DNA of 64,000 nt from Octopus sinensis (GCF_006345805.1 NC_043000.1:124806001-124870000), one strand, 5' to 3'. Numbered from the stretch's first letter, positions 8,331-32,704 are shown. Notes: generated by a model not told the origin, from the letters alone. Translations and numbers: made by a program.

Positions 8331-8716
8331 GATATGTGCATCTGGGTGAATGTATGAATGTGTGCATATGTACGTGCATGCATGCATGCACACGTGTGTT
8401 CATGTGTGTGTGTTTGAGAAAGAACAGTGCAGAGGAGAGCCAGATATATGCGAAGATGTAAGATGTAAATTCATTTATATAATTACTCTTTTGCTTTTTT
8501 ACTTGTTTCAATAATTTGATTATGGCCATGCTGGAGCATTACCTTTAGTTGAACAAATCGGCCACTAGGACTTATTCTTTGTAAACCTGGTACTTATACT
8601 ATCAGTCTCTTTTGCCGACCCACTAAGTTACAGAGACAGTGTCAAGCGATATTGGAGGGACAAACACAGACACACACTCACACACAAATACCCCCACCAT
8701 ATATACTATATATTAC

Positions 8717-8778
<62 letters not shown>

Positions 8779-8798
8779 ATATATATATATATATATAT

Positions 8799-8885
<87 letters not shown>

Positions 8886-8993
8886 ATGATCCAAAGATGA
8901 AAACACAAAGAGAAAACACAACAACGCAAGGACGTGGAACAAGTATAGTATTATTGGATGCTCAGGAAAGAAGGAAAGAAGGAAAGAAGGAGG

Positions 8994-9030
8994 GTTTAAT
9001 GTTTTGATCGGAGCTCTTCGTCATAAACAT
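8994..9030 (-). ncRNA. degenerate minimal hammerhead ribozyme, family A copy 1
   Basis: Minus strand GTTT-ATGACGA-A-GAGC TCC GATC-AAAAC-ATT-AAAC versus family consensus GTTT-CTGACGA-A-GAGC TCC GCTC-GAAAC-GTT-AAAC. Confidence 0.6.
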
Positions 9031-9232
9031 AGGAAAAAGAAAGATCCAAAGAAGGGAAGATGGAGGAAAAAAATCGCCAACGGTACACACACAGTTACAT
9101 TTTGAATATATTTGAATATATATATATATAAAGTTAATCCAAACATGAAAACACAAAGAGAAAACAACAATGTGAGGAGGTGGAACAAGTATAGTGTTAT
9201 TGGATGCTCAGGAAAAGAAGGAAAGAAGGAGG

Positions 9233-9269
9233 ATTTAACATTTCGAGCGGATCTCTTTGTCAGAAACAT
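9233..9269 (-). ncRNA. degenerate minimal hammerhead ribozyme, family A copy 2
   Basis: Minus strand GTTT-CTGACAA-A-GAGA TCC GCTC-GAAAT-GTT-AAAT. Confidence 0.65.
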
Positions 9270-9628
9270 AGGAGAAGGAAAGATCCAAGGAAGGAAAGAT
9301 GGAGGAAAAAAATAGCCAACGATACACACGCAGTCTGGGCTTCTCCCAGTTTCTGTCTACCAAATACTCTCACAAGGCTTTGGTCAGCCTAAGGCTATAG
9401 TAGAAGACACTTGCCCAAGGTGCCATGCAGTGGGACTGAACCTAGAGCCATGTGGTTGAGAAGCAATCTTCTTACCACATGGCCACACAAACACACCAAC
9501 ACCGATTGTCAAGCAGTGGTGGCGGTGATGGTGGTGGTGATGGTGGTAGGGACAAACAGAGATACACAGGCACACAGATACATACATATATACATACATA
9601 TATGTATACATATATGAATGTATATATA

Positions 9629-9691
<63 letters not shown>

Positions 9692-9692
9692 C

Positions 9693-10736
9693 AAAGGTAT
9701 AGAGAAACTTGAGGAATTTAAAATACTACTAAATGGAATAAATGATAATATACAATTCACGATGGATCACAACGAAAAAGAATTACCATTTTTAGACATC
9801 CTCATTAAGAAAACCGGCAAAAAAATAGAGACAGATATCTACTATAAACCGACAGACTCCAAACAATACCTACCCTTTGATTCATGCCACCCACGACACA
9901 CAAGAATAAATGTCCCTTTTTGTTTAGCTAGAAGGATCTGCACCATAATATCAGACACAAACACCCGACACACACGTCTCCAGGAACTTAGAACCACACT
10001 CACAAATAGAAACTATCCACAGCCCCTAATAGACAGTGCAATCCAAAGGGCACTCAAATTAAGTGTAGAAGACCTGAGACAAACCAAACCAAAAAAGAAA
10101 GAACAATTAAAAACCCTTCCCTACATCTCTACACACAACCCACTCAACAATGAGGCCTTCAGCACCATACTACAAAGCACAGCCCTACTAAAGGGAGACC
10201 CAAAGATGAACCGGATCCTCGAAACACACACCATCATTAAAAGTAAACGGCAACCAAAATCCTTGAAAAGGATTTTAACCCAAGCTAAACTGCACTCAAC
10301 ATCAACCACAAAACCAGCAGTTAGAAAATGTGGAAGGCCCAACTGCGGAATCTGTGTCATCTTGATAGAAGGTTCAGAATTTATACTAGAACAAGGCCAC
10401 CAGTTCACCATTAGAGCAAACTTCACCTGCGCATCAGAAAACTTAATTTACGTCATAACACGCGCAGGCTGCAATAGTCAGTATATAGGCCATACAAAAA
10501 ATAGCTTACATAACAGGATGGCGGTGCATAAATCACAAATTAGAAACCCTGAATACCGGAAAATACCGGTCAGCGGACACATAGATAGATGTGCTGGAAA
10601 TGTAAATCCGAAATTTACAACTTACCCGCTTTATAAATTCAGTGACAACGCAACCTTCACGCAACGCCAAAATAAAGAACTGTATTTCATCAAAAAATTT
10701 AGACCAAGTTTAAACACCCTAGGCCAGGAATATTAA
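9693..10736 (+). CDS. PLE reverse transcriptase C-terminal/thumb region + GIY-YIG endonuclease (5'-truncated ORF)
   Basis: Frame open from 9693. Motifs: NIQFTMD..LPFLDI, TDIYYKPTDSKQYL..SCHP, LARRIC..SD, NYP; linker CGRPNCGIC; GIY-YIG NLIYVIT..YIGHT..R..H; C-terminal KELYFIKKF.P.LN. The YxDD motif lies upstream of the truncation. Confidence 0.92.
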   Translation, partial: KGIEKLEEFKILLNGINDNIQFTMDHNEKELPFLDILIKKTGKKIETDIYYKPTDSKQYLPFDSCHPRHTRINVPFCLARRICTIISDTNTRHTRLQELRTTLTNRNYPQPLIDSAIQRALKLSVEDLRQTKPKKKEQLKTLPYISTHNPLNNEAFSTILQSTALLKGDPKMNRILETHTIIKSKRQPKSLKRILTQAKLHSTSTTKPAVRKCGRPNCGICVILIEGSEFILEQGHQFTIRANFTCASENLIYVITRAGCNSQYIGHTKNSLHNRMAVHKSQIRNPEYRKIPVSGHIDRCAGNVNPKFTTYPLYKFSDNATFTQRQNKELYFIKKFRPSLNTLGQEY

Positions 10737-10919
10737 AACAAAAGATTGGTCCTCCGAAAAGGAGAAGCAAAATTCCACCACGGCCGCTACCTTAAACAGT
10801 CACTCACACTGACGGAAATATACCTTAGGGAAAAAAGGAAAAACATTTATAAAAAGATCTCTTCGAACAGATCTAACCCTGATGGACTGGCCACATACGA
10901 TACAGCTAAGGGTCAGACC

Positions 10920-11433
10920 CGATTCTGATTGGTCAACACGTTGATGACGCCTCGTTCTGCTAGACTGGACAGGATACAAACAAGGGGCAGATCTAATACA
11001 GCTATAGGCCGGGAATGGTCAGAATATTGATGACGTCCCGTTCTACTCAACTGGTCACCTGGCAGGGTGCAGACAGGGGCAGATCTAATACAGCTAGAGG
11101 TCGGGATTGGTCAGAATATTGATGACGTCCCGTTCTGCTTGACTAAGCCACCTAACGAAACGATTGGTCAAGGAGCAGATCTAATACAGCTATAGGTCGG
11201 GATTGGTCAGAATATTGATGACATCCCATTCTGCTTGACTAAGCCACCTAACGAAACGATTGGTCAAAACAGGATACAGACAAGGGGCAGATCTAATACA
11301 GCTATAGGTCGGGATTGGTCGGAATATTGATGACGTCCCGTTCTGCTTGACTAAGCCACCTAAAGAAACGATTGGTCAAAACGTTGATGACGTCACGTTA
11401 CGCTGGACTGGCCACCTAACAGGTGATATAAAA
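10920..11433 (+). promoter_or_regulatory. tandem enhancer/promoter-like array in PLE pseudo-LTR: four 92-112 bp units with ATTGG (CCAAT) and TGACGTC (CRE) motifs, then TATAAAA
   Basis: Units start CAGATCTAATACAGCTA at 10988, 11080, 11176, 11288. Seven ATTGG; TGACGTC at 11031, 11123, 11331; perfect TGACGTCA at 11388; TATAAAA at 11427. Confidence 0.6.
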
Positions 11434-11761
11434 CCCAAACAATTCACAAGGTTCGCCAGAACGATCCAACGAATACCGACCAAAAGTCATCACAGTTCCT
11501 CAAGGTAAAATCTAAAATGAATTCCTCGCTCTTTCAGGAACACCAATTTTTTATATTGACTGCATATCACCACTTTGATCTATTTTTTATATTGAATGCA
11601 TATCACCACTATGAGCCACTACATCATACTCTCTAAACATATAGCATGAACGAACTCACTTCACGATATATGAACTTTTGATGTCTGACTCTATTGTATA
11701 TTATAAATGAATTTTTTTATATTTGATAGCATGAACTATCTTTTTTTATATATAACTTTTT

Positions 11762-11810
11762 TTGATAAGGTTCTCAAGAACCGAAACATGTTATAATGTA
11801 TATATAAAAA
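11762..11810 (+). ncRNA. degenerate hammerhead ribozyme (family D) in PLE 3' region
   Basis: TTGATAA-GGTTC TCAA GAACC-GAAAC-ATGTT: perfect stem II, GAAAC and palindromic AACATGTT, but the CUGANGA core is damaged. Confidence 0.55.
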
Positions 11811-11916
11811 TTAAAAATTTGTGTACTATAGCAGCATTTTCGAACTTCATTTTTTACAAATATATACCCACTCGTATACGAGCTAATCTCATTATAAATA
11901 TATATATATATATATA

Positions 11917-12364
11917 GTTAATCCAAACAAGAAAGCACAAAAAAAAACACAACAACGCGAGGACGTGGAACAAATATAGTATTATTGGACGCTCAGGAAA
12001 GAAGGAAAGAAGGGGGGTTTAACGTTTCGAGCGGAGTTCTTCGTCGGAAACATAGGAGAAGGAAAGATCCAGAGAAGGGAAGACAGAGGAAAAAAATCGC
12101 CAACGGTACACACGAGGTCACATTTTGGAGTCAGGCATGTTGAGAAGTGGTGAATGTCTGTGTAGGTGTAAGTGGTGGCGACACAAGTTGAAAAATGGAG
12201 GTAGAAGAAGAAAGGTAAAAAAGGACAAGGAAAAATTACGAGGAAAAAGTGGAAGAGTCACGGACAAATTTTTTTGATTTCCAATCACGATTTCAGTGGC
12301 GTACTCCGGAAGAATGGTAACAGTAATCCGTAGGTGTAAAAGTCCAGGAATTGGTATCCAAGGC
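11917..12364 (-). mobile_element. family-A hammerhead element copy 3 with about 250 bp of extra 5' sequence
   Basis: Homologous to 8885-9105 and 9133-9330; ends in (TA)n; continues upstream into a pyrimidine-rich unique segment. Confidence 0.75.
12017..12053 (-). ncRNA. minimal hammerhead ribozyme, family A copy 3
   Basis: Minus strand GTTT-CCGACGA-A-GAAC TCC GCTC-GAAAC-GTT-AAAC. Stem I GTTT/AAAC; palindromic AACGTT replaces stem III. Confidence 0.7.
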
Positions 12365-12799
12365 ACTCATATATTTATATATGCACAAGAATTCGAAGAT
12401 GGTGAGCTGGCAGAATCATTAGCATCACAAGCAAAACATTTAACACCAATTCTTTCAGCTCTTTACATCCTGAGTTCAAACTCCATCAATGCTGATTTTA
12501 CCATTCATCATTTCGGAGTCAATATAATAAGTATCATTTGATCATAGAAGTCATTGTAATTGACTAACGCCCATCCTCTCAAAATTGCTGGCCTTGTACC
12601 AAAATTAGAAAGAATTATTGGTAGAAGAATTCTAATATAGAGATACATCAACCTGACTGGAAAGAAAATATATATAATTATTTATTGACTTGGAAATAAT
12701 TCTTCAGCTTATGATGAAAAAATATTTTTAGTGGTTAAGTATTATAAATGAGAAGTGGATAAATATATATGTATACACACATATTATATATATATATAT

Positions 12800-13305
12800 A
12801 TATATCGAACCAAATCAAAATAGATGAACATCAATGGAATTTGTATCCTTGTGGTACCAGTGCCGGTGGCACATAAGAAAACCATCCGAACGTGATCGTA
12901 GCCAGTACCGCAACGACTGGCCTCCGTGCTGAGGGCACATAACAAACACCATCCGAGCGTGGCCGTCCGCCAGCCCCGTCTGGCACCTGTGTCGGTGACA
13001 CATAAGAAAACACCATCCGAGCGTGGCCGTCAGCCAGCCTCGTCTGGCACCTGTGTCGGTGGCACATAAAAAACACCATCCGAGCGTGGCCGTCTGCCAG
13101 CCTCGTCTGGCACCTGTGTCGGTGGCACATAAAATCACCCACTACACTCTCGGAGTGGTTGGCGTTAGGAAGGGCATCCAGCTGTAGAAACACTGCCAGA
13201 TCTGACTGGCCTGGTGCAGCCTTCGGGCTTGCCAGACCCCAGTTGAACCGTCCAACCCATGCTAGCATGGAAAGCGGACGTTAAACGATGATGATGATGA
13301 TGATG
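12800..13305 (+). mobile_element. S3 RTE-derived repeat with three ~63-bp tandem units
   Basis: Units CACCATCCGAGCGTGGCCGT..GGCACATAA at 12947, 13011, 13074; (GAT)n tail. Confidence 0.85.
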
Positions 13306-13554
13306 ATATATATATACATATGTATATGTCCACACATATATTATATATATATGTATATACATATATATATATATCCACACATTATATATAGACACACATA
13401 TTATACACACACACACATATATACATACATTATCATCATCATCATCATCATTTAAGGTCCGTTTTCCATGCTAGCGTGGGTTGTGGTTGGGTTATGTAAT
13501 AGATTCCTATTGTTTAAGTTATTGATTATGTTAATGCCATTGTAATATTTCTAG

Positions 13555-13623
13555 ACAGAATTAACAAGTGAGAAAAAGGATCACTTCTACAAGACCCTAT
13601 TAAGGACTGCTCGAGAAATGAAT
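13555..13623 (+). CDS. candidate exon (TELTSEKKDHFYKTLLRTAREMN), phase 0-0
   Basis: Acceptor ATATTTCTAG|, 69 nt open frame, donor AAT|GTCAGA; phase matches the 7630-7739 exon. Confidence 0.5.
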
Positions 13624-13966
13624 GTCAGAAACAATTATTACAAAAATTTTAATCACAGTTGTAATTAAAAAAAACAAACAAAACAAAACAATCTATTAAT
13701 TTATATTTTACTGTGTTTTTTTTAGTTGTTTCAGTCTAATTTGACTGCAGCCATACTAGGACACGCCCTTGAACCTTTAGTTGGATGAATCAACCCCAGT
13801 ACTCATTTTCTAAGCCTGGCACTTATTTTATCTGTCACTTTTGCTGAACCACCAAGTTACAGGGATGCAAACACAACAATATCGATTGTGAAGCAGTGGT
13901 GAGGACACAAACAGTCACAAAGATGCACACACATATGTATATGTGTATACATACACACACACATAT

Positions 13967-14133
13967 AAAAGCTTTTTTTATTCTCTCTTTGTTTATTTCC
14001 TTGTGTTCCTTTCTGCTGAAGAGCGTAGGCTCGAAATGTAAATAACTTTCTCACCTTCCTGCGCATCAAACTATTACACTTGTTTGTTGTTTATACACCT
14101 GTCTTTGTCTTTTCTTTTTCTATAAATTCCAAC
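13967..14133 (+). mobile_element. family-B hammerhead mini-element inside the microsatellite of an S1 SINE
   Basis: Homologous to 32525-32704; flanked by (CA)n/(TA)n; S1 3' half at 13720-13965. Confidence 0.75.
14009..14044 (+). ncRNA. minimal hammerhead ribozyme, family B copy 1
   Basis: CTTT-CTGCTGA-A-GAGC GTAG GCTC-GAAAT-GTA-AATA. Confidence 0.6.
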
Positions 14134-14166
<33 letters not shown>

Positions 14167-14190
14167 ATATATATGTATATATATATATAG

Positions 14191-14512
14191 GTGACCAAGT
14201 TAGTCTCTGTTATCTTGGAGATCAAGTTAGGCTTCCATTATCTAGTTGACCAAGTTAGTAGTGGATGTGGATGCTCTGAGAGCATAGCTGTAAGAATAAG
14301 ATTAGACTGGGCAAAGTTCAGAGAGTTCCTACCTCTGCTGGTAACAAAGGGCCTCTCACTCAGAGTTAAAGGCAGATTGTATGATGCCTGTGTGTGACCA
14401 GCTATGCTACATGCCAGTGAAACATGGGCTGTGACAGCCGCGGACATGTGTAGGCTTGAAAGAAATGAAGCTAGTATGCTTCACTGGATGTGCAATGTCA
14501 ATGTGCTTGCAC
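14191..14512 (+). mobile_element. RTE LINE RT fragment
   Basis: RIRLDWAKFREFLPLLVTKGLSLRVKGRLYDACV..MLHASETWAVTAADM..LERNEASMLHWMCNV. Confidence 0.85.
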
Positions 14513-15117
14513 ACACACACACACACAAACGTATACACACACATGTATGAATATGTGTGTATGTATATACATACACACACTCACTCGCAAACGCACACAC
14601 ACACATGTACGAATATGTGTGTATACACACAAACACATACACATGTACAAATATGTGTGTATGTGTATACACACACACATGCACACACACACACACACAA
14701 ACTCTCACACATGTACAAATATGTGTGTATGTGTATACACACATAAACACACAAGTTCACATACATGTGTATGTATATGTGCATATATGTATACACACAT
14801 GCAAACACACAAGTGGAGGCATGTAACTTAGTGGCTAAGGGGTTAAATTCCTGATTGTACAATTGTAGTAGCAATTCCTGGACTGAGCAATGTGTTGTAT
14901 TCTTGGGCAAAACACTTCATTTTATGTTGCTCCAATTCATTCAGTTGGCATAAATGTAATTCTGTAAAGGACTAGCATCCTATCCAGTAAGGTAATATAT
15001 ACACCACAGAAACCAGGAAACCAACATAATGAATCCATATTACACAGAAAAGAGCTTTATCATTTATATATATATATACATATATATATATACGTACATA
15101 TATATATATATATATAT

Positions 15118-16065
15118 GGCTTCTGTGCCGGTGGCACATAAAAAGCACCATCCAAACGTGGCTGATGCCAGCGCCGCTTCGACTGGCTTCTGTGCCGGTG
15201 GCACGTTAAAAGCACCAACCGATCGTGGCCGATGCCAGACTCCCCTGGCACCTGTGCCGGCGCGTAAAAAGCACCCACTACACTCGCGGAGTGGTTGGTG
15301 TTAGGAAGGGCATCCAGCTGTAGAAACACTGCCAGATCAGACTGGAGCCTGGTGCAGCTCCTGGCTTCCCAGACCCTGGTCTAACCGTCCAACCCGTGCT
15401 AGCGCGGAAAACGGACGTTAAACGATGATGATGATGATGATGATGTTGATATATATATGTATATATATATACATGCATACATTAGGTGGTGAAGCATGAC
15501 CTTTGGATGATGGGCCTCACAGAGGCAATGACAAAAGACTGAAACCTCTGGAGATATGCTGTGACTGAGAAGACCCGGCAAATAAAATGAGTCCACAGCT
15601 GTAACCTACACCAGTGTCGCATAACCAGCCCACTCAAAAGTACCTTGTATTGTAGGGCGACATGCTGTGCTTGAGGAGACCTATTGAGTCAAGTATATCA
15701 ACATCAACAGCAATATCAAAATTAAATCAAATGGAAATTGTAGTTGTGAACCTTGTGCTGGTAGCATGTAAAAAGCACCATCCGAACGTGGCTGATGCCA
15801 GTGCTGCTTTCACTGGCTTCTGTGCTAGTGGAACATAAAAAGCACCATCTGATCATGGTTGATGCCAGCTCCTATGGCCCCTGTGCTGGTGGCATGTAAA
15901 AAGCATCCACTACACTCTCGGAGTGATTGGCATTAGGAAGGGCATCCAGCTGTAGAAACGCTGCCAGATCAGATTGGGGCCTTGTGCAGCCTCCTGGTTT
16001 CCCAAACCCTAGTCAAACTGTCCAACGCATGCCAGCATGAAAAACAGACGTTAAACGATGATGAT
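15118..16065 (+). mobile_element. two tandem S3/RTE 3' ends
   Basis: (GAT)n tails near 15425 and 16057; the second begins with the RTE ORF end at 15480. Confidence 0.8.
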
Positions 16066-16189
16066 TAATAGTTTCATATGTTGAGAAATACCTCAAACAT
16101 ATTCATCAGGTAGAAACCACGTATTATAATGAACTAAAAATTGAATGAGAGAAGAAACATGAAAAGTTGAGAAGGAAGTATATGAAAAA

Positions 16190-16745
16190 ATGCAGAAGGT
16201 TAAAAAGCTGCTAAGTTGGCAAGCCACGTATGGAGCTTAAAATCTAATGCAACACAACATGTGATTAAGTGGAAAATAATTGAAAAATCCACACCTGATG
16301 TTAATAGATCAAATAAATGTAAGCTAAATTTGACAAAGGTTGTCTCAGTGATGATTGAATTTTACTTTTATGGTATTATATTGTGCTTGGCTGTTTATAT
16401 TAAATTTTTGTATACTCCTTTGCATTCATAGATTTCTATGGTAAATACATATATGCTGACTGAAGGAATTAGCCAACACCAGCCGATTGGGTTGTTCTCA
16501 CTGAAAAAGCATACGGAAATATGCGAAACTAGACGTCTAGTCTGAGAGATTCTCAGTTCGGTCATGGAACAGGTTCTTCCCCTGTCAGCGTGTGTGTATA
16601 CATTTGTGCTCTTCCTACATCACAAAGAGTATTTTACTCCAATTTCTAGCAATGTAGGTGTCTTGGCATCATTAGTCACATTTAGTGACAATTGAATTTT
16701 TCCTTTATGGTATTATATTGCACTTGGCTATATATATATATATAG
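16190..16745 (+). mobile_element. old PLE relic (GIY-YIG C-terminus + pseudo-LTR with hammerhead)
   Basis: LASHVWSLKSNATQHVIKWKIIEKSTPDVNRSNKCKLNLT resembles the PLE endonuclease C-terminus; ~50-bp direct repeat at 16347-16400 and 16685-16740. Confidence 0.65.
16495..16548 (+). ncRNA. near-intact type I hammerhead ribozyme (family C)
   Basis: TTCTCA-CTGAAAA-A-GCATA CGGAAA TATGC-GAAAC-TAG ACGT CTA-GTC|TGAGAG. All three stems pair, the cleavage triplet is GUC, and there is one core substitution (G8>A). Confidence 0.8.
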
Positions 16746-17537
16746 CTAATTGTATGTTTGTCTTACTGCCAAACCAGCTCTAGCACTGTGCTACATACTG
16801 TCAAGGAGTTTTAAGCTGAATGATAGAGAATGTCATGGAAATGAAACTGTAATATAGTTTATGAGGGTATTTCCTAGCTTATGAATGTATGAATGTTAGA
16901 AGAGGAAGTTGAGAAACTATATGTTAAATTTAGTTAGGAGAGAGAAAGTAGCAGGAGGTATGGCAATGTATAATAAATACCATAAGGCTGACAAACTAAA
17001 TATTCATTTCAGAGAAATGTATTGGAAATAATTTGGGTTTTCTGCTTTTCTTTCAGAGTTATTGAAAAGGAGACAAATAATTATCATTATTAGAGTTTAA
17101 TGGACGAGGGGAAAATCATGAGATTGGGAAGATTAATTCTTGGTAGAGCCTGTAGAAAGCTCAAACTGTGAAGATCAGTAAAGCAAGGGTGAATAAAACA
17201 ATTGAGAAGATTTAGTGAAAGCTGTATGTTCATCAAGGGTAGTTGCAAAGACAATTATGTAATCTACGGATGAGCTGTTGCTGTTATTGATTGTGTGGCC
17301 CTATAATCAAAGGTGTTTCAGCCATGATCACTGTGGTTTGGTGGAGGTTTGACATCTTTTTCTAGCAGGTCAAATGACTCTCAGTGATTTAAGAGGCTTC
17401 CACTTTGGAAATGTAAGTAAACACCTACACATCTGAAAACAACATAGGAAAAATAAAGGAAAAGAAAAACAATACAAAACAAAATATGTTAATGTTTAGG
17501 GTGTTAATGATATATATCTATGATATCTATCTATACA

Positions 17538-17573
<36 letters not shown>

Positions 17574-17739
17574 TTTACACACACACACAAAAATACATAT
17601 GTAGACATATATATGTATATATACCTATATACATATATGATGATGAAGAAGATGGTGATGATGATGATGATATATATATATATAAAAATATAAATATATA
17701 CATACATATATATATATATATGCATGTGTGTGTGTACGT

Positions 17740-18690: not shown

Positions 18691-19333
18691 TGTGCATCTT
18701 CCACATATGAAAACTATCTTTTCTGATAACCTTATTAATCCACTGCACTTCTTGTGTGTCCATAGCTTGCAATGGGTACACTATATGGAGTTCCTGCCTA
18801 CACTTTTCCTACAAATCGAACATGGTCGCCTATTCGAGGGAAGGGTCCTCCTTTGTGAAGGTACATGGTTGAGTGGTTATGATATTGTACTCATGATCAT
18901 AAGATTGTGGTTTCGATTCCTGGACCAAGCAGTGCAATGGGTTCTTGAGATATCATTTGGCCCAGTCCACTCAGTATGTGCATCCCATGCAGGGCAGAGA
19001 AGTGGGGTATATATGTCACAAAATCTGGGACCTTTGAACTCTTTTTGTTTTGTTTATTATTGATTTTGTTCTATTTAATTCATTAAATTAAAGTAATTTC
19101 TATATCTATACATATATATATATCAGCCGCCAACACTTTTTTCTGCAAATAGGGGTAGCTTATCCTGTTCAGGCTATATTATTAGCATTATCCTGCGTTT
19201 GAGAATTTAAAATTACTTCTTTAAATTTCTAAGACATCTCAATGCTTCTAAAGCAAACTTTGTTTACATTCATCATAATTTGAATTTATACACACACACA
19301 CACAGACACATATATATGTATATATATATATAC

Positions 19334-19366
<33 letters not shown>

Positions 19367-19427: not shown

Positions 19428-19792
19428 GTGGCACGTAAAAAGTACCATCCGTTCGTGGCCGTTGCCAGCGCCGCCCCGACTGGCCTCGTGCCTAAGGCAC
19501 GTAAAAAGCACCATCCGTTCGTCGCCGTTGCCAGCCTCGCCTGGCCCCCGTGCTGGTGGCACATAAAAGCACCATCCGATCGTGGCCGTTTGCCAGACTC
19601 GTCTGGCACCTGTGCCGGTGGCACGTAAAAAGCACACACTACACTCATGGAGTGGTTGGCGTTAGGAAGGGCATCCAGCCGTAGAAACTTTGCCAGATCA
19701 AACTGGGCCTGGTGCAGCCTTCTGGCTTCCCAGACCCCAGTTGAACCATCCAACCCATGCTAGCATGGAAAGCGGATGCTAAACGATGATGA
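19428..19792 (+). mobile_element. S3 RTE-derived repeat
   Basis: Tandem GGCACGTAAAAAGCACCATCCG units and (GAT)n tail. Confidence 0.8.
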
Positions 19793-19957
19793 TATATATG
19801 TATGTATACACACACATACGTACATACATATACATATAGTCCCAGTCAATGAACTCCATTTCCTTCATCTTTGGTTCCTTGCTCAGCCTCTTTCATAGAC
19901 ACATGAACATGAAAATACACTTTGAAATATTGCATCTATTTATTTATAAATTCCAAG

Positions 19958-20019: not shown

Positions 20020-20124
20020 GTAACTTGCATTATTAAGTATAGCAAACATATATATAAATAAGAAGAAAGACATGCTTACTGATAACCAGAAAAATGTAAG
20101 AAATGTGTTGTGAAATAGAAGGAG

Positions 20125-20196
<72 letters not shown>

Positions 20197-20201
20197 GAGA
20201 A

Positions 20202-20232
<31 letters not shown>

Positions 20233-21169
20233 GGGAGAGAGAGAGAGAGGGAGAGAATGAGAAAGAGAGAGAGAGGAGAGAGAGAGAGAGAGGGGAGGAA
20301 TGATATAAAATACACTAAGAAAATAAGTATTAGGTAAAGAATGATAGAAATTCTGTGAGAGAAAGCAACAAAGAGAATTTTGATTAATAGAAAATCTTAT
20401 TTATTCATCGAGAATTTGTTGAGTAAAAAAAGTGATGCGAGTTCTAAGATTAGTTTGTCCTTTCCTTAGATGGACTTAGCACTTAAAAGAAAAAATTACT
20501 GTGTTTACTGCACATGATGTCATAAAAAGAAAAAAAGGACACATCAGGTGCATGCACACACTTTTCTGAACTATTGAAGTCACCTGACTGCTGTTACTGT
20601 TGCCATCACATGAGTGATATTGCTGTTGTTGTCGTCACTAAACTGCAATTACAGTTGCGATCACAAGATTCTTGATGCAGTTGCAGTCACAAGACTGTAA
20701 TTACAGCAAAAGTCACAAGACAGGATTTGAAACCTGATTGAATTGCTTCAGGCTAAAAATTTGGCGCTTCCTTATAGAGATGTTGTTCACAAAACTTGAT
20801 GCCATCAAAGTGTGGATGTGATAGAATCCAGAACTCTCTAAAGAATTAACTCTTCTAATGCTGCAACATTGAAAATAAAATTATTTTACTATTAGGATTT
20901 CAATGATTAGTATAAAACAATACTCAAAGTTGTTGATTACTTTAATATAATTAAAGAGAGCATCAAATTATTTTTGAAAAATTAATGCCTACAATATTAT
21001 TGGTTTAAAATTTCAGCACAAAACCAGTAATTTTTGGGAGCAGGTAGGTCAATTACACTTGTCCCAGTGTTCAACTGGTGCTTATTTTATCGACCCCAAA
21101 AGGATCACAGGCAAAGTCAACCTTAGTAGAATTTGAACTCAGAATGTAAAGATGAATGTAATGTCTACA

Positions 21170-22559: not shown

Positions 22560-22592
<33 letters not shown>

Positions 22593-24223: not shown

Positions 24224-24278
<55 letters not shown>

Positions 24279-24314
24279 GCGAGAGAGGGAGAGAGAGAGG
24301 GAAGGAAAGCGAGA

Positions 24315-24391
<77 letters not shown>

Positions 24392-24570
24392 TGCTTTCTG
24401 AAATCTTTGTATATATTTCTTCAAATTTTCCTGAATTTTATAAATGCATATTTTGTAAGAAGAGTCTTCACAGTATGAGACGAAGTAAAAACAAAATGTT
24501 TAGTCAAATGACATATTTTAAGGTCGACACTGTAATTTCTTTCTTTCTTTCTTTGTAACTTCCTGTTCAG

Positions 24571-24603
24571 GTAAATTAACTGTGTATTCATTTTCACCAA
24601 AAG
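24571..24603 (+). CDS. candidate 33-nt exon (GKLTVYSFSPK) with an alternative donor at 24631
   Basis: Long polypyrimidine tract ending TCCTGTTCAG|; donors AAG|GTAAGA (24604) and GTG|GTAAGT (24632). Confidence 0.35.
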
Positions 24604-24639
24604 GTAAGATATCTGCATCTACTCTGATGTGGTAAGTTC

Positions 24640-24945
24640 CAAATACTTGGAGCGAGGATGTTGCCAGTGCCGCTGACTGACTGGCTCCTGTGCAGGTGGC
24701 ACATAAAAAGCACCATTTGAGCATGGCCGTTGCCAGTACCACCTAACTGGCCCCTGTGCCGGTGGCATGTAAAAGCACCCACTACACTCTCAGAGTAGTT
24801 GGTGTTAGGAAGGGCATCCAGCTGTAGAATGCCAGATCAGATTGGAGTCTGGTGCAGCCATCTGGTTTGCCAGACCTCAGTCAAATCGTCCAACCCATGC
24901 TAGCATGGAAAGCAGATGTTAAACGATGATGATGATGATGATGAT
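24640..24945 (+). mobile_element. S3 RTE-derived repeat
   Basis: Diagnostic 3' end and (GAT)n tail; inverted partner at 25045-25420. Confidence 0.8.
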
Positions 24946-26054
24946 CCACATGTAGAGATTATGTCTTCTAAGACACTATAAGTGTTTCAAGATATTTAAG
25001 AAATCCAGTCTCTGAGGAATTTGGTCTTTAGTCTGCCTCATTCTCATCATCATTTTCGTCGTCACCATGATGATGACGACGACGACAATGACAATGACAA
25101 CGACAATGACTACAACGACGACGACGACCACCACCACCACCACCACCTCTATCATCGTTATCATCCTTTAACATCTGTTTTCCATGCTGGCATGGGTTGG
25201 ATGGTTTGACAGGAGCTGGTCAGCTGGAGAGCTGCCCAGACTCCATGTCTGTTTTGTCGTGGTTTCTATGGCTGAATACCCTTCCTAATACCAACTACTT
25301 TACAGAATGTATTGGGGGATTTTATGTGGCACCGGCATGGGTGCTTTTTATGCGGCACTGGCACACCACAAACCCACAAGATTAGGAATGCTCAGCTGAA
25401 TAAGAATGCAGGAGGACATGCCTGTGTGCAAGGACTAAAACCCCAGGCTGACAAATGCCTTGTGAGTGAATCTGATGGAAACTGTGTGGAAGCCTGTCAT
25501 ATAAATATATTTATATATGTGTATGTGTGCCTTTGTGCTTGTGTTTGTTCCTCCTCACTGCTTGACAACTGGTGTTGGTTTGTTAATATCCCTATAGCAC
25601 ACAGGTTTGGCAAAAGCGACTGATAGAATAAGTACCAGACTTGAAATGGAAAAAAGAGTATAGGGGTTTGATTTGTATGGCTAAACTCTTCAAGGTAGTG
25701 CCCCAGCATGGCTGCAGTCTAATGACTGAAACAAACAAAAAGCAAAAGAAAAAATAAACATATAAATAATAAAAAAAAGTAAAATGGTTGTAAAGTCAGT
25801 GTATTACAAGATGGAGAAAAGAAAGTGATATTAATATTTTGGGCAATATGTCCTTTGTCAAAATTGGCTGAAAGAAAAGAAAATTTCTTGGGGAAAAAAG
25901 CATAGTAAACAATGTTGAAAATGAAATAAGCAGAGGATAATGGTTACTGGAATGGAAGAGGAGAGTGACAGGCAGTGAGTGAACATCAGTTATGCATAGT
26001 AAAGAAATAGAATGGTTAGCAGAGAGTAAGTTTGTATGCATGCACAAATACATT

Positions 26055-26102
<48 letters not shown>

Positions 26103-26399
26103 TGTATGCATTCATGTATATATGCATGTGTGTATGTATAAGTACATGTATGCACGTATATACGTTTGTATTTATGCTTGTATGTGTGTGGTTAGGAGAG
26201 AGTTTGATAATATGTATGCATGACAGGGGGATTAACAGGGCAAGTTACAGCAAAATGAAGTGTGTGTGTGTGTGGGGGGGTGAGTGTATAAGAATATGAA
26301 GAAGAGAGTTTGTTCAAGGAAAATGTGGGTTGGATTGGAAGAAATGTAAGTTACAAATGATGGAGCACTCAAGGGATCAGGTGATGGTAAAATAGATGG

Positions 26400-27320
26400 T
26401 AAAGAGGAAGAGAACAAAGCTGATAATCTGGTGGGGGCTTAGGAAAGGGAGCAGAAGAAAATTCAGTAGTTAGTGCTAGTTGATGGCTAGTTTAGGATAG
26501 CTCTGTCAAAGAACAAGTGAATTATTTAGTGGGATTTAGCTTGGATGTCAGAGTCTTAGCTACAGAGGAAGCTGAGACACATGAATCATAAGTCGGAGTA
26601 TGTGTGAATGGGGTGAGATGAGGAGATATTGAGGAACCAGTGAATCAGGAGATTTGTGAAAGATGTGGCGTAAGAGGATGGAATTCACTTGCTTTAGTTC
26701 CATTTTAGCACTCATGTCTTTGGCCAACCCTTTATTACCCAACATTGTGTAAGCTTCACTTTCCAAATCCTTGACCACTTTATATGCATGCTCCACCAAA
26801 ACATAACCTTTTGCCTTAAATGATGATTGCATGCTTAATATATAAGAAAACCGGTAAAAGGTTAGCTGATGGAATTAGAGAGCATCTGCTGGATAACCAC
26901 CAGAATGACAAAGGATGTGTTCAAACTATTGCTTGACTCTTCAGTTCTTATTTTTTTATTGCCCACAAGGGGCTAAACATAGAGGGGACAAACAAGGATA
27001 GACAAAGGGATTAAGTCGATTACATCGACCCCAATTCACAACTGGTACTTAATTTATCGACCCCGAAAGAATGAAAAGTAAAGTCAACCTCGGTGGAATT
27101 TGAACTCAGAATGCAGCGGCAGACGAAATACCACAAAGCATTTCACCCGGCATGTTAACGATTCTGCCAGCTCGCCGCCTTAACTCTTCAGTTCTGTGGG
27201 TCATTCCTACATCTTGCCATCTTCTCTTCAACAACATCACTGTAATCCAGTTACCTTGATCTTCCAAGAACAACAGTTAATTTTCTGATTGGAGACAGCT
27301 ACCCGATCAGGTGTTATTCT
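26400..27320. mobile_element. decayed PLE: RT-thumb fragment on - strand (26700-26400) abutting a GIY-YIG fragment on + strand (26740-27320)
   Basis: Minus: HTYSDL*FMCLSFLCS*DSDIQAKSH*IIHLFFDR (thumb-like). Plus: YI..TGKRLADGIREHL..FQEQQLIF (GIY-YIG-like). Many stops. Confidence 0.55.
26949..27182 (-). mobile_element. S2 SINE monomer with 13-bp target-site duplication
   Basis: ACTCTTCAGTTCT at 26936-26948 and 27183-27195. Confidence 0.88.
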
Positions 27321-28959
27321 TATTTATCGTTCATCTTTTGTTTTACTCATTAGACTGTGGCCATGCTAGGGCACTGCCTTGAGGAATTTTAGTTGAATGA
27401 ATCAACCCCAGTACATTTTTATAAGTCTGGTACTTATTCTATTGGTCTCCTTTGCCAAACTGCTAAGTTATGGGGACATGAAAACATTAACACCAGTGGT
27501 CAAGCAGTGGTGATGGAACCCCCCCCCCACACACACACATTCAATGGGCTTCTCTCAGTTTCCATCTATGAAATCACTCACAAGGCTCCGGTTGGCCCAA
27601 AACTGTAATAGGAAACACTTGTCCAAGATGCCACATTGTGGAACTGAACCCAGAACCATGTGGTTGGGAAGCAAGTTACTCACCACTCAGTTACACCTGT
27701 GCCTATATTGATTAGCTTTTCTCTTATCTATGCCCTAAATTCAAACAAACGTCTGCATATTCACACCTCCTCCCTTCCACTGGCCTTTCACACATACACA
27801 AGTCTTTGTTTCCACCTAAAACTATTTTCTTCTAGGGTCATTACCTTCACTTCTGCTCCCTTTCTTTTTGCTTTTACACAGGCTATGTCCATATCACCGT
27901 GCCTTGTACTTACCTATACTACTTCCAGTCCCACTTATATTCACACTTACACTCACTCATAAACATGCATGCTGCATACCTACATCGATGCACTTCATAA
28001 CTACATGCCCCACTAATCCCTACCTACACTCGCACACACACACCATAAAAATTCTCTCCTACCCCATCACACTCTCATACATAGCATATACATACCAATT
28101 ACTTATTTGTATGTCTGTTATCTTATCTCTTTCCATGCATTGATCAATGTTTTCTCTCCTATCATCATACTCTTCTCTGTTAGAAACCGCAAATTTCTGC
28201 CCAACTCCATTTTGGCATTGTTTAGCATGCTGCCTTTATCACACACACACACAGATGTGCACCGAGGCACACACACATGTACACAGTGGCACACACACAC
28301 ACACACACACACACAAGTACGCAGAGGCACACACACACACATGTACACAGAGGCACACACACACACATGTACACAGAGGCACACACACACACACATGTAC
28401 AGATGCACACACACACGCACACATGTACACAGAGGCACACACACACACATGTACACAGAGGCACACAAACACACATGTACACACATGCACACACACACAA
28501 CCACACACACATATACATGCATGCACGCACACAGACATTTACTTTATGCAAATATCTTTTTTCTCCTTTCTTCTCAACCTACCTATCTTAAGAAAGCACA
28601 AATTGTCCAAAACATCAATATTTCTTCGTTTGCTTCACAATATAACACATTAACTTTGTTACTCGTTTCTGTTTTTCTTTTCATTCGCTTGTTTTCCTTC
28701 ATAATTTCCATTCAATAAATTCATCCGACTACCAGCAGTACGTAGAACTGTCTGTGGTTTGTTGTTATTTAGTCAATAGTTGTCACTACTTAGATCATCA
28801 TATTTGTAAATTGGTGTAAATCATAGAACACTATTATTTTTGACCAACAGTTTACAACTTTTTACTATTGCTACCTATTCTGACCAAATCAATATTCCTT
28901 TATGGCGGCCTTTTTTTTTTTCTTTTTCAATATTGAGATAGATAACATGAAAGCGTATT

Positions 28960-29200
28960 CGAAATGAGATTATTCAAGAATGGAATGGAGTGAATGATGG
29001 GATCACAGAATAACAGAAACACGAGTTCTGCTGGGCTGGCCATGTTGTAAGGTTCACAGACAACAGGTGGACCTATGCAGTTGCAGAGTGCTATCCAAGA
29101 GATTGGAAGAGGCCGTCTAGAAGGCTTTCATGATGAGGGGAAGATGATTTGGATAAGTAAATAGTACCAAGATGTAAAAGAATGGTGCAATGAAGACAAA
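28960..29200 (+). mobile_element. decayed RTE-clade LINE C-terminus (second subfamily)
   Basis: WAGHVVRFTDNRWTYAVAECYPRDWKRP resembles the WAGHV..DNRW..V.EW.PR..KR motif. Confidence 0.7.
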
Positions 29201-29209
29201 ATTAGAAGA

Positions 29210-29625
29210 GGGCAACGAGCTGGCAGAAATGTTAGCATGCCGGGAGAAATGCTTAGTGGTATTTCGTCTGCCACTACGTTCTGAGTTCAAATTCAGCCGA
29301 GGTCGACTTTGCCTTTAATCTTTCCAGGGTCGATTAAATAAGTACCAGCTACGCATTGGGGTCGATGTAATCGACTTAATCCATGTCTCTGTCCTTGTTT
29401 GTCCCCTCTGTGTGTAGCCCCTTGTGAGTAGTAAACAAATAGGTATTTCGTCTGTCTTTACGTTCTGAGTTCAAATTCTGCCGAGGTCAACTTTGCCTTC
29501 CATTCTTTCGGGGTCGATTAAGTAAGTTATGCACTGGGGTCGATATAATCGACTTAATCCGTTTGTCTGTCCTTGTTTGTCCCCTCTGTGTATAGCCCCT
29601 TGTGGGCAGTAAAGAAATAAGAATT
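29210..29625 (+). mobile_element. S2 SINE, head plus two 184-bp units
   Basis: GGTATTTCGTCTG at 29258 and 29442. Confidence 0.85.
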
Positions 29626-29784
29626 GGAAGCTCATTGTGACCAGTGATGTATAACAACATCTGATGGCCTGGTCAATACTGTAATAATGTGAGATAAATG
29701 ATGAAAACAGCAACAACAACAATGATAATAATTCTTTCTACTATAGGTTCAAGACTGGAAATTCAGTGGGACTAGTTGATTACA

Positions 29785-30129
29785 GAAGGTAAATGGCTCA
29801 GTGGTTAGAGTGTTGGGCTCACAATCATGAGGTAGTGAGTTCAATTCCTGGACTTGGCTGTGTGTTGTGTTCTTGAGCGAGACACTTTATTTCATGTTGT
29901 TCCAGTTCACTCAGCTGTAGAAATGAGTTGCGATGTCACTGGTGCTAAGTTGTATCGGCCTTTGCCTTTCCCTTGGATAACACTGGTAGCATGGAGAGGG
30001 GATACTAGTATGCTAGGGAGACTGCTAGTCTTCCATAAACAACCCTGCCCAGACTTGTACCTTGAAGGGTAACTTTCTGGCTGTTATCCTATGATCATTA
30101 ATAACTGAAAGGGGTCTTTACCTTTTACC
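29785..30129 (+). mobile_element. S4 CORE-like SINE with 13-bp TSD, inserted in an S2-type SINE
   Basis: CTAGTTGATTACA at 29772-29784 and 30130-30142. Confidence 0.88.
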
Positions 30130-30354
30130 CTAGTTGATTACATCAACTTCAGAGCTCAACTGGTACTTAATTTATTGAGCCTAAAAAGATGGAAAGCAAA
30201 GTCAACTATTCAGTATGTTCTATAAAGTGGTTTGATTTAGGAAGAGCATCCAGTCATACAAGCCATGCAAAAGCTGACATTGGGGTTTGACTCAGTCCTG
30301 TAGCTCATTGAATCTTGTCAGACCATCCAACTCATTCCAACACGGAAAATAGAT

Positions 30355-30513
30355 AATACAGTTCTATATTTAAGAGATGAGGAATTATGTACGTTATTTT
30401 CATTATTTACATTTACAAGACACCTGGTGAAGGCTGGAGGGTATATCAGCTGAAATGTTGTGTTAACAACAAACTAGATGAGGACAAATATCCGTCAAAT
30501 ATAAATAATGTAT
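30355..30513 (+). mobile_element. 159-bp hammerhead mini-element (family E) with inverted segment and 11-bp TSD
   Basis: GGAAAATAGAT at 30344-30354 and 30514-30524; 16-bp inverted repeat 30399-30414 / 30497-30512 (14/16 match); inserted in an S3 copy. Confidence 0.75.
30419..30464 (+). ncRNA. minimal hammerhead ribozyme, family E
   Basis: GACAC-CTGGTGA-A-GGCTG GAGGGTATAT CAGCT-GAAAT-GTT-GTGTT. Stems I and II pair; A6>G in the core. Confidence 0.65.
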
Positions 30514-31385
30514 GGAAAATAGATGTTAAGAGATTGATGGTGATGACGATGTAGAAACATGTTTAAAGTGCCCTTCTTTATTTATAACAGTGTAATGTGA
30601 TTTGATGAAAGTGTTAGCTAATATTTCTAGCATTACAAGGCAGTGAGCTGGCAGATTAAACACTTAGCAGCATTTCAATCCATCTATATGCTTTGAGTTC
30701 AAATGCAGCCGAGGTCGACTTTGCCTTTCATTCTCTTGGGATCGATTAAATAAGTACCAGTTATGCACTGGGGTTGATATAATCGACTTAATCCACGTGT
30801 CTGTCCTTGTTTGTCCTCTCTGTGTTTAGCCCCTTGTGGGTAGTAAAGAAATAGAAATAAGTACAAGTTGAGTACTGAGGGATCAATAAAATAAGTACCA
30901 ATTAAGCACTGGGGGTCAATGTAATCGATTTATCCCCTTCTCCAAAACTGCTGGCCTTGTGCCAAATTTTGCAACCAATATTTCTCGCAATTCAAGCAAA
31001 CAACACAAAAGCTAATCAATGACATCTTATCGAGTGCTTGAAGTGCTTTCTGTAGATGTTCTGGTTCTATGTCGAAGCTGTGATTCGTGCATTCACCAGT
31101 TTTTAAAGGATTCTTTCAATTACTTCATGACCTATCATAAAACCAACAGCACTCGTATTACCTAAAAATCTTATATATAACTCTTATTCTATACTGCTTT
31201 AAATTTCACTTCCTATACAGAATACACATCCTGTTATCTCCAACTGAATATATTTTCTTGCAAAGCATTGTGCTTCGTGTGAACGTGTCCCTTGAGGTTT
31301 AACTTCTTGTTATTGGTTTACACTTCAATACCAATGAGACACGAAGGAAGTCCTCTAGAATTTGGTATGAAAGCAAAATAATCAG

Positions 31386-31500
31386 CACAACTCACTGTTA
31401 AGCTTTCTGTTTTCATCTTGTATACCTCTTTCCTTTGAAGTCGTTTTCTTATTCTTGATATTAATGTTCCTATCAGTTTCATCCCTGTGCTATAGAAGAA
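31386..31500 (+). CDS. candidate exon encoding a hydrophobic segment (..FEVVFLFLILMFLSVSSLCYRR)
   Basis: Consensus donor GAA|GTAAGT at 31501 and an open frame; acceptor uncertain; a minus-strand exon reading (31489-31396) is also possible. Confidence 0.25.
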
Positions 31501-32420
31501 GTAAGTGTCTACATTCTGAGCAAAATTAAAAATATCAATAGAGATCTTTATATATATATGTGTGTGTGAATACACATATTTACATGCGCATACACATACA
31601 CATATACGCTGACACATGCATATGCATACAGATATATTCACACACTCACACACACACATTTACATAAACACATAAAATATATTTAGAAAGGGAAAAACAG
31701 AAAGAGAAGAGACAGGATGTGAGTTTGTCACACACTCACACATGTATAAATATCTACACACATGTATATATGGACAGATACACATGCATAAACAGACACA
31801 TACACACACAAATACATGCAGGGAGACACATATATGCGTAAGGTAGACACATATATGCATACACAAGCACACATACATGCACATATGCACACACACACAC
31901 ACACACACACGAGGAAATTTAAATATTGAGAATAACTGTAGACATTCATATCTTTTGGATTATAAAAGACTACAAGGAATATTAAACTGGTATACAACAC
32001 AGTGAAGGCACATGGCTCAGTGGTTAGAGCGTCAAGCTTACAATCGCAAGGTTGTGAGTTCGAATCCTGGACTGGGATTGGTGATGGTGGTGGTGGTGGT
32101 CGGGGACTGGTGTGCTATAATGCCGTTGAGAGATAGGTACCGAAATGGTGCGCATTCTCTCCTGATGACCCCATACACTTGCTGGCTTCTGGTATGTAAA
32201 AGCTTTCGAGTGGTAGCATTTCCATGTTCTTCACTCTTTTACTTGTTTCAGTCATTTGACCATGGCCATGCTGGAGCAAACAAATCGACCCCACCAGGAC
32301 TTATTCTTTGTAAACTTAGTACTTATTCCGTCTGTCTCTTTTGCCGAACTGCTAAGTTATGGGGACGTAAACACACCAACATCACTAGTCGAATGATGGT
32401 GGAGGAGAAACACAGACACA

Positions 32421-32508
<88 letters not shown>

Positions 32509-32524
32509 TATATATATATATGTA

Positions 32525-32704
32525 TGATTGACCGCTAGCTCCAAAAGTTTTTTATTCTCTCTGTTTATTTCCTCGTGTTCGTTTCTAATGAAGAGCATAG
32601 GCTCGAAACATAAAAGACTTTCTCACTTTCCCGAGTATTAAACTAATACATCTGTTTGTTGTTTATACACCTGTCTTCGCCTTTTGTTTTTCTGTAAATT
32701 TTAA
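32525..32704 (+). mobile_element. family-B hammerhead mini-element inside the microsatellite of an S1 SINE
   Basis: Homologous to 13967-14133; S1 halves at 32228-32460 and 32951-33127. Confidence 0.75.
32581..32616 (+). ncRNA. minimal hammerhead ribozyme, family B copy 2
   Basis: GTTT-CTAATGA-A-GAGC ATAG GCTC-GAAAC-ATA-AAAG. Confidence 0.6.

Follow-up and report, generated by a model that had tools for sequence, protein, structure and literature searches.

The stretch analysed here is 64,000 nucleotides of Octopus sinensis DNA (GCF_006345805.1, NC_043000.1:124806001-124870000), referred to in its whole length as the window. It carries a coding Penelope-like element (PLE), two families of short non-coding elements with minimal hammerhead ribozyme (min-HHR) motifs, here called A and B, and numerous copies of S1, a repeat that is likely a tRNA-derived short interspersed element (SINE) and that contains an internal TA/CA microsatellite. 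Four S1 tracts within 8483-33127 contain Penelope-type inserts (Table 1), and the nesting of the PLE and the short elements in S1 microsatellites is confirmed. A small independent sample came from nine loci around PLE genes, reached through their proteins and hence ascertained through PLE open reading frames (ORFs). These amount to 231 kb (295 kb with the window) and comprise L001 from O. vulgaris, L002, L007, L008 and L009 from O. sinensis, and L003-L006 from O. bimaculoides.

Table 1. Features of the four occupied S1 loci, in window coordinates
Feature	Position	Strand	Basis
S1a, SINE 3′ half (left half in window orientation)	8483-8700	-	blastn to full S1 copies; 77% identity to S1 consensus 6-224
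S1a expanded internal microsatellite (TATC)16(TA)12(CA)22(TA)14	8701-8882	.	sequence read, tract calls
A1, non-coding min-HHR element; decayed core 9002-9023	8883-9116	-	85% identity to A2 and A3
(TA)7 separating A1 from A2	9117-9130	.	tract call
A2; core 9241-9262, G8->A at CpG	9131-9334	-	blastn and alignments
S1a tRNA-like head (right half)	9335-9485	-	88% identity to S1 consensus 245-394
S1b fragment, ~90 bp	9486-9580	-	two high-scoring segment pairs, 87% and 82%, S1 consensus 156-218
TA-rich tract upstream of PLE; 71-bp (TA)n core 9621-9691	9581-9691	.	tract calls
5′-truncated Penelope-like element	9692-11898	+	Pfam, protein homologues, DNA match to L001
(TA)9 common to the 3′ ends of PLE (+) and A3 (-), tail to tail	11899-11916	.	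sequence read
A3; core 12025-12046	11917-12127	-	blastn and alignments
S1c, 3′ half only	13700-13934	-	74% identity to S1 consensus
B1; core 14014-14036	13968-14133	+	blastn and alignments; 5′ end ~25 nt shorter than B2
S1d, 3′ half	32225-32434	-	81% identity to S1 consensus
S1d internal tract (CA)19(TA)16...(AT)7	32425-32526	.	tract calls
B2; core 32586-32608; then CA/TA tract 32706-32756	32527-32705	+	blastn and alignments
X, single-copy insert of ~200 bp in S1d tract	32757-32955	.	no second copy in 295 kb
S1d tRNA-like head	32956-33127	-	87% identity to S1 consensus 234-409

A preliminary description of this DNA had placed A1 and A2 inside the tract of one S1, the coding PLE in the (TA)n of an adjacent S1 and followed by A3, and B1 and B2 each in the tract of another S1. 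The first of these placements is borne out: A1 and A2 lie exactly between the S1a halves at 8483-8700 (with its tract) and 9335-9485, and the 5′ end of A2 joins the right half directly at 9335. Around the PLE, the S1b stretch, the (TA)n and A3 are all present, but S1b amounts to only ~90 bp, too short for standard blast, and lacks a right half. Its aligned stretch (consensus 156-218) is the segment immediately before the internal tract. No S1 right half was found after the PLE and A3, where a 245 bp single-copy stretch, Y (12128-12372), lies instead. B2 does sit between both halves of S1d, with a short TA stretch separating X from the right half, but B1 is flanked by the left half of S1c only. 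A mixed CA/TA tract lies between that left half and B1, (TA)7(TG)9(TA)n follows B1 at 14134-14189, and no S1 right half was found beyond it.

S1 is ~400 bp long, with its sense strand on the minus strand of the window (18-copy consensus). Self-comparison with blastn identified 24 copies or fragments in the window, to which the nine independent loci add 45, giving 69 in 295 kb and a share of ~6-8% of the sampled DNA. The head of the consensus contains an A-box-like TGGCTGTGTGG and a B-box-like GGTTCAGTCCC, ~40 nt apart, and the 3′ end of the 18-copy consensus is A-rich (GTAAAAGAGTAAAAA). ARAGORN called no tRNA in the window at default settings, S1 head included, and at a relaxed threshold the consensus head gave only a weak cloverleaf; the assignment of S1 as a tRNA-derived SINE is therefore graded as likely only. 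In window orientation the consensus contains an internal dinucleotide seed, ...ACACAGACACACAAACAAACACACATATATATATACATATATACGACGGGC..., in the context ...ACACAGACACACAAACAAACACACATATATATATACATATATAC|GACGGGC.... Each S1 copy carries this (AC)n(AT)n seed, and S1 brings it to every landing site. In some copies the seed has expanded to 50-130 bp, a lengthening that slippage would produce. Expanded tracts without an insert were found in many copies, for example in the window at 1289-1372 (TA, 84 bp), 38587-38644 ((CA)24) and 34637-34660, and outside it in L001 ((TA)26) and L009 (>100 bp). The seed in the 18-copy consensus and these insert-free copies uphold the earlier account of S1 as a repeat with an internal TA/CA tract. 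Another SINE-like family in the window, R3/R6, forms head-to-tail dimers with a period of 178-184 bp (29258-29619, 46386-46817 and 53302-53669).

The open frame of the coding element (9693-10736, 347 codons) spans the C-terminal region of a reverse transcriptase (RT), a CX4CxxC linker (CGRPNCGIC, read from the translation) and, downstream of the linker, a GIY-YIG domain (PF01541, residues 251-338, E=6.7e-6, above the Pfam cutoff). Its closest protein, at 93% identity, is the Octopus vulgaris hypothetical protein P0006 (chromosome OX597819.1). The window is thus octopus nuclear DNA, and nothing prokaryotic or viral plays a part. A total of 272 PLE-type homologues carry RVT_1, GIY-YIG or both, and the upstream part of the frame aligns with the RT C-terminal region of the RVT_1-bearing ones. 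The window copy lacks the RT core because it is 5′-truncated inside the reverse transcriptase; the core is present in the L001 and L002 copies. No pseudo-long terminal repeat (pLTR) was found on this truncated copy. A nearly full-length O. vulgaris relative (L001 8152-11836) has (TA)n on both sides and lies outside S1; it is 92.8% identical in DNA to the window PLE over the first 1.1 kb, which comprises the 1,047-bp coding frame and ~50 bp of 3′ untranslated region (UTR). By the order of its predicted domains, the coding element is a canonical PLE with a C-terminal endonuclease (C-terminal-EN+), in which GIY-YIG lies C-terminal to the reverse transcriptase.

The 3′ UTR of the window PLE contains 5-6 tandem units of 96/112 bp at 10927-11420, an array that, judged by its motifs, may be an internal promoter or enhancer. 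Each unit holds GATTGGTCA-N6-TTGATGACGTC, a reverse CCAAT box with a half-site resembling a cAMP response element (CRE). All 8 occurrences of GATTGGTC in the 64 kb window fall within this UTR, 7/8 of them in the array. At the array position L001 has a different insert, rich in CAG/ACT. Further downstream, at about 11763-11800, lies a min-HHR-like motif of the U3-A8 type whose core is kept and whose helix I is lost. The corresponding motif in the L001 3′ UTR, TTGATAA-GGTTC...GAACC-GAAA-CATG-T, is U3-A8 covariant, and 11727-11767 of that locus passes a strict min-HHR descriptor. Helix II of this PLE motif is GGUUC/GAACC (5 bp) and its palindrome is ACAUGU, for which cofolding of the L001 motif predicts an intermolecular helix. 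A classic tandem/inverted PLE cluster was seen in L007 (~9770-9835 and 9959-12170), where the 3′ end of the second PLE is repeated in inverted orientation upstream of that PLE, which lies directly after the (AC)10(AT)27(TA)7 tract that closes the first.

A reading of the arrangement PLE(+)-(TA)n-A3(-) as a single composite PLE structure was rejected, since this PLE family has other neighbours elsewhere, B(-) in L002 and the tail of another repeat, R2, in L001. The PLE and A3 are therefore taken as independent hits in one tract. Tail-to-tail neighbours in one tract thus occur both in the window (PLE/A3) and in L002 (PLE/B).

Element A is ~215 bp long and non-coding, with three copies in the window that carry the hammerhead on the minus strand; element B, also non-coding, is ~185-210 bp long and has two. 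Outside the window we found one full A and one shorter variant, A′, both in L007, one B in L002 and a dimer, Ba+Bb, in L008. The elements occur singly or as dimers with (TA)n between the units (A1-A2 and L008 Ba-Bb). The consensus of four A copies, gtttCTGACGAaGAGCtccGCTCGAAAcgTT|aaac, which parses as gtttCTGACGA-a-GAGC-tcc-GCTC-GAAA-cg-T-T|aaac, is a perfect minimal hammerhead of the PLE type with CTGACGA...GAAA boxes. Both this consensus and the L001 PLE contain the core boxes C/U3-U-G-A-N-G/A8-A and G12-A-A with C3-G8 or U3-A8 pairing. Every individual A or B copy in the window has 1-3 core mutations. Those of A differ between copies, and two of them are CpG decay (G8->A), the pattern expected of decayed copies of a functional master. 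A and B have in common a GAGC/GCUC helix II with an extra A and a palindrome ACGU (in B, allowing for CpG decay to TG/CA), and B also retains the GAAA box of A. The B core reads CTGC, CTAA, CTGT, CTGT and CTGT in five copies, with CTGTTGA as the majority form and U replacing the invariant A6 in 3/5. Aligned over their whole length, A and B score 112.8 vs 54 +/- 7 for shuffles, which suggests two related subfamilies of one element.

The 5′ ends of four A copies fall within ~12 nt of one another and those of three B copies within ~15 nt, which argues for discrete elements of ~200 bp and against random truncations. The distance between hammerhead and 3′ end is ~95-110 nt in A and B and ~70-100 nt in the coding PLE; because these distances are alike, A and B would derive from a PLE terminal region. 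None of the 9 A/B-type copies runs into an ORF, and the stop-free frame of A3 (73 aa), used as a protein query for further A copies in public assemblies, yielded no candidates. The proposal of non-coding hammerhead elements of 150-230 bp thus stands as far as discreteness, shortness and lack of coding are concerned, but only the A consensus is perfect and B is degenerate at position 6. The description also needs correcting in that the A motif is on the minus strand, opposite the PLE, and that the individual copies are mutated in the core. A third mini-element family, C, is represented in L009 (~12795-12950) by an element of ~150 bp in a free TA tract, between (AT)20 and (AT)6 and with a PLE 3′ end just upstream. 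The U3-A8 minimal hammerhead of this element, at 12911-12944, passes the strict descriptor.

None of 100 Markov shuffles of the window produced a match to the strict descriptor. The raw window likewise had 0 hits, because every copy there is mutated; only the L001 PLE and the small L009 element pass. Cofolding of A gave ambiguous dimer results. The best Rfam matches, of the kind of mir-297 and MIR810, are spurious and arise from TA/CA repeats and from two R2 tails in inverted orientation. R2 was also tried as a hammerhead carrier and rejected: it shares ACGTTAAAC with A but has no CUGANGA box in register.

The junctions of these elements with dinucleotide repeats were placed at the base-pair level for ~15 independent PLE-type elements of several families in three species. 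TA flanks the PLE on either side, in the window as in L001, and TA or CA does so for B2 and for L008 Ba and Bb; A1 is likewise flanked on both sides, as are A′ (TA) and the full A ((TG)n) of L007. PLE 3′ ends of several families adjoin (TA)n in L001, L002, L007 (two), L008 and L009 (two), and the PLE 3′ end in L006 is probably at (TA)14, with an assembly gap (a run of N) between. Uninterrupted S1 copies have the tract at the same S1 position. Since the repeat lies on both sides and the same tract is found in empty S1 copies, the tracts pre-existed the elements.

Occupancy of S1-borne and other TA loci was compared by Fisher test after inserts had been removed in silico and TA loci called. With S1b counted as S1, 4/9 S1-borne loci of the window are occupied vs 0/18 others (p=0.007), a post hoc comparison. 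The independent O. vulgaris and O. sinensis loci gave 1/16 vs 7/90 (p=1.0), and the combined data 5/25 vs 7/108 (p=0.049). Of the TA loci sampled, about 10-30% are S1 tracts. None of the ~8 PLE 3′ ends outside the window, which belong to several families, lies in S1 (231 kb, three species). Mini-elements outside the window occupy free tracts in L002 (B), L007 (A and A′) and L009 (C), and S1 in L008 (Ba+Bb); several mini-element loci have CA/TG beside TA. The preliminary description had proposed the S1 microsatellite as a landing pad and had named equal insertion frequency in S1 tracts and in any (TA)n as the finding that would count against it. This S1-specific version is not upheld, because S1 tracts in the independent loci show no higher occupancy than free ones, and no PLE 3′ end outside the window is in S1.

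We consider it probable, at roughly 0.7, that TA/CA tracts of the octopus genome are repeatedly hit by microsatellite-targeting Penelope-type retroelements and that four of the tracts hit here happen to be internal to S1. The targeting itself is seen in the placements above: octopus canonical C-terminal-endonuclease PLEs with a CX2-5CxxC linker and GIY-YIG integrate inside (TA)n. If known PLE biology applies, the GIY-YIG endonuclease with its linker would nick (TA)n and target-primed reverse transcription would follow, leaving TA on both sides and often a 5′ truncation. A and B, as derivatives of a PLE terminal region, may be copied in trans by PLE reverse transcriptase and endonuclease into similar tracts, and S1 tracts would be used as TA/CA tracts and not as S1.

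Several observations weigh against this account. All four occupied TA loci of the window are S1-borne (p=0.007, post hoc), and mini-elements are S1-borne at ~5/9 loci by hand count vs ~19% of TA loci for S1 (25/133). Among all loci and PLE 3′ UTRs searched by blastn in the 295 kb, no ORF-bearing PLE shares sequence with A or B, and because no autonomous partner with such sequence was found, we only infer their mobilisation in trans. The PLE beside A3 has another type of hammerhead (U3-A8, 5-bp helix II). B appears hammerhead-derived, but its ribozyme is probably dead, given the U at the invariant core position 6, and activity is probably not conserved in the family. The Rfam hammerhead models (types I, II, III, HH9, HH10) had no match at gathering in the whole window, none at E<=10 when short segments surrounding A3 and the PLE motif of L001 were scanned, and none among the best 150 matches for 8000-33500, a miss that is expected because min-HHRs have no helix III. 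Thermodynamic folding gave the hammerhead fold only for some variants and does not discriminate at the length of the motif.

That the TA tracts are tails of the elements, or are generated at integration, is very unlikely, although (TA)n adjoins every window A copy 3′ and TA is absent from the 5′ ends of A2 and A3. The preliminary description had itself named this possibility as one that would overturn it. The check went in favour of the description: the PLE (window and L001), B2, L008 Ba/Bb, A1 and L007 A′ and A are each bordered left and right by TA or TG, tract composition varies by locus (TA, CA, TG), and insert-free S1 copies hold the same tract at the same position. Passive clustering, in which untargeted insertions survive in repeat-rich DNA under low constraint and microsatellites expand around them later, deserves still less credence. 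The window is extremely repeat-rich, and R2, X and the further insert Z also lie within TA tracts, but the ~15 independent elements junction exactly in dinucleotide tracts, and inserts in S1 strike the ~50 bp tract and not the remaining ~350 bp. More serious, yet still improbable, is that the S1 tract is a preferred landing pad for PLEs and above all for the mini-elements, so that SINE amplification steers PLE spread in a three-tier dependency. It would account for the occupancy in the window and for the combined figure, for the presence of B in an S1 tract at 3/4 loci (including O. sinensis L008, where S1 has the opposite relative orientation), and for the mini-element loci in which CA/TG lies next to TA, a composite that S1 supplies. 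Its difficulties are that the window statistic is post hoc, that the independent loci show no excess, that 0 of roughly 8 autonomous PLE 3′ ends outside the window lie in S1, and that the A and A′ of L007, the B of L002 and the C of L009 are in free tracts. A narrower proposal, which we hold to be about as doubtful, is that the A/B superfamily prefers S1-like composite CA/TA tracts and that a burst of the SINE, driven by a long interspersed element (LINE), made a substantial share of the sites of these PLE-driven elements.

A question about A and B themselves is whether they are 5′-truncated tails or solo pLTRs of unsampled autonomous PLE families. We regard this as the strongest of the competing accounts, though a minority one. 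The position of the hammerhead relative to the 3′ end resembles that in the coding PLE, most solo min-HHRs have been attributed to truncated PLEs (PMC4209133), the coding window PLE is itself 5′-truncated, and an origin as solo pLTRs would likewise give defined ends. Random truncation of an element of 3-4 kb, however, would not place the 5′ ends of four A copies within ~12 nt and of three B copies within ~15 nt, and 0/9 A/B-type copies continue into an ORF.

Much of this has precedent. PLEs with a CX2-5CxxC linker (Neptune, Nematis, Hydra, Naiad) prefer (TA)n (Craig et al. 2021, PMC8557442), and a (TA)n preference of PLEs is also attributed to Arkhipova 2006, as cited in PMC8557442. The octopus elements resemble Neptune/Nematis-type PLEs in their domain order (RT, then the CX4CxxC linker, then GIY-YIG). 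They are also alike in being bordered by (TA)n at either end, in 5′ truncation, in having inverted and tandem neighbours (L007) and in the hammerhead of the terminal region; the likeness to the clade is one of linker motif and not of RT phylogeny. Unlike those PLEs, the window copy is a 5′-truncated fragment without pLTR and has the 96/112-bp array with CCAAT-box and CRE-like motifs. Min-HHRs were described in the terminal repeats of PLEs and as thousands of solo genomic copies by Cervera and de la Pena (2014, PMC4209133). The motifs reported here share with them the core boxes, the G10.1-C11.1 pair, U3-A8 covariance (in the PLE), the lack of helix III, a palindromic 15.x-16.x stretch that would imply function as a dimer, and an occurrence mostly as solo copies, some of which face a copy on the other strand within a few hundred bp. 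They differ in that helix II of A and B has 4 bp vs 7-8 bp in schistosome min-HHR families and that the B consensus is without A6.

Solo min-HHRs and retrozymes have both been described as PLE derivatives (PMC4209133, PMC7229834, bioRxiv 10.64898/2026.07.22.740005). The non-LTR retrozymes of metazoans (LTR, long terminal repeat; Cervera and de la Pena 2020, PMC7229834; Li, Clavereau and Pollet 2026 preprint) are thought to be derived from PLEs and mobilised by them (PMC7229834; Li, Clavereau and Pollet 2026 preprint). A and B resemble them in being short (retrozymes, 170-400 bp), AT-rich, non-coding and hammerhead-bearing, and in occurring as monomers and dimers. Retrozymes, however, are arranged in head-to-tail arrays, and their hammerhead is of the canonical type I, complete with helix III and loop contacts. 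A and B have a min-HHR, and the only multimers seen in the sampled DNA are dimers with (TA)n between the units; head-to-tail arrays were not found. Elements specific to microsatellites are likewise known, namely Dong in (TAA)n, Waldo in (ACAY)n, Mino in (AC)n, Kibi in (TC)n and the rice Micron miniature inverted-repeat transposable elements (MITEs) in (TA)n (PMC3812793). As with these, the octopus copies lie within a single kind of simple repeat, and Micron is in addition short, non-autonomous and found in (TA)n. All of these use the machinery of LINEs of the apurinic/apyrimidinic endonuclease (APE) type or of DNA transposons, whereas a GIY-YIG PLE would be used here. Transposons that bear microsatellites include the Alu/L1 proto-microsatellites and the RTE/SINE microsatellite families of Lepidoptera (PMC3812793, PMC2887409). 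S1 is like these as a dispersed element with a seed that expands later, yielding many microsatellites with common flanks, and unlike them in that a tRNA-like SINE holds the seed in its interior and that the resulting tracts are reused as targets by another class of retroelement.

The three-tier arrangement had been offered as possibly undescribed. Each tier is already published, but in the literature searched we found no explicit description of SINE-seeded tracts reused by another retroelement class, nor of the octopus A/B families or of cephalopod hammerhead-bearing elements. What is new is therefore modest: the octopus A and B families, an Octopus PLE family with a U3-A8 hammerhead, and an explicit case of reuse of a SINE-borne tract as a PLE target. 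The whole is a local case of known PLE behaviour, and a preference for S1 is unproven.

Other repeats of the region also adjoin TA tracts. R2, an abundant family with internal tandem units of 63-67 bp and a (GAT)n tail, adjoins (TA)n at its tail and at variable points of 5′ truncation. Copies lie in the window at 12806-13305, 15117-15442, 19428-19793, 24660-24943, 36761-37066 and 40891-40932, among others, and in L001 at 11840-12200; in L003 (19422-19617) R2 splits S1 at the internal tract. From these positions R2 looks like a second family inserting into TA tracts, commoner here than A or B. Two inverted R2 tails around a TA/CA tract form a long hairpin at 13247-13491, which matches Rfam MIR810 at 67.6 bits, below the gathering threshold of 170, and was rejected as a microRNA, being a repeat artefact. 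Single-copy inserts of 100-245 bp recur in S1 or TA tracts: Y near A3 and X near B2, Z (42867-43057), which splits the S1 at 42698-43258, and U in L007 (20080-20215). For X, Y, Z, U and one more such insert, V, blastn found no second copy in the 295 kb sampled. Long low-complexity GA-rich tracts lie at 7850-8314, directly upstream of the region studied, and at 20122-20292 and 24226-24385. Two tandem repeats look young, a perfect 39-bp unit repeated 3.1 times at 59032-59150 and a 50-bp unit repeated twice, 98% identical, at 57156-57255.

These data document that several families of canonical PLEs target (TA)n for integration across three Octopus species, and they add to the cephalopods a pair of related minimal-hammerhead elements of ~200 bp. 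They also provide a concrete, countable case in which the microsatellite built into a SINE is reused as an integration site. A preference for composite CA/TA tracts, if true, would amount to a measurable dependency between transposon classes in the expansion of cephalopod genomes. Should an enrichment of S1 tracts prove real genome-wide, one transposon family would be shaping the niche of another; otherwise the region is a textbook example of how PLEs are known to choose their targets. Its main use would then lie in the annotation of repeats, where split copies of S1 and solo min-HHR elements are readily given the wrong label.

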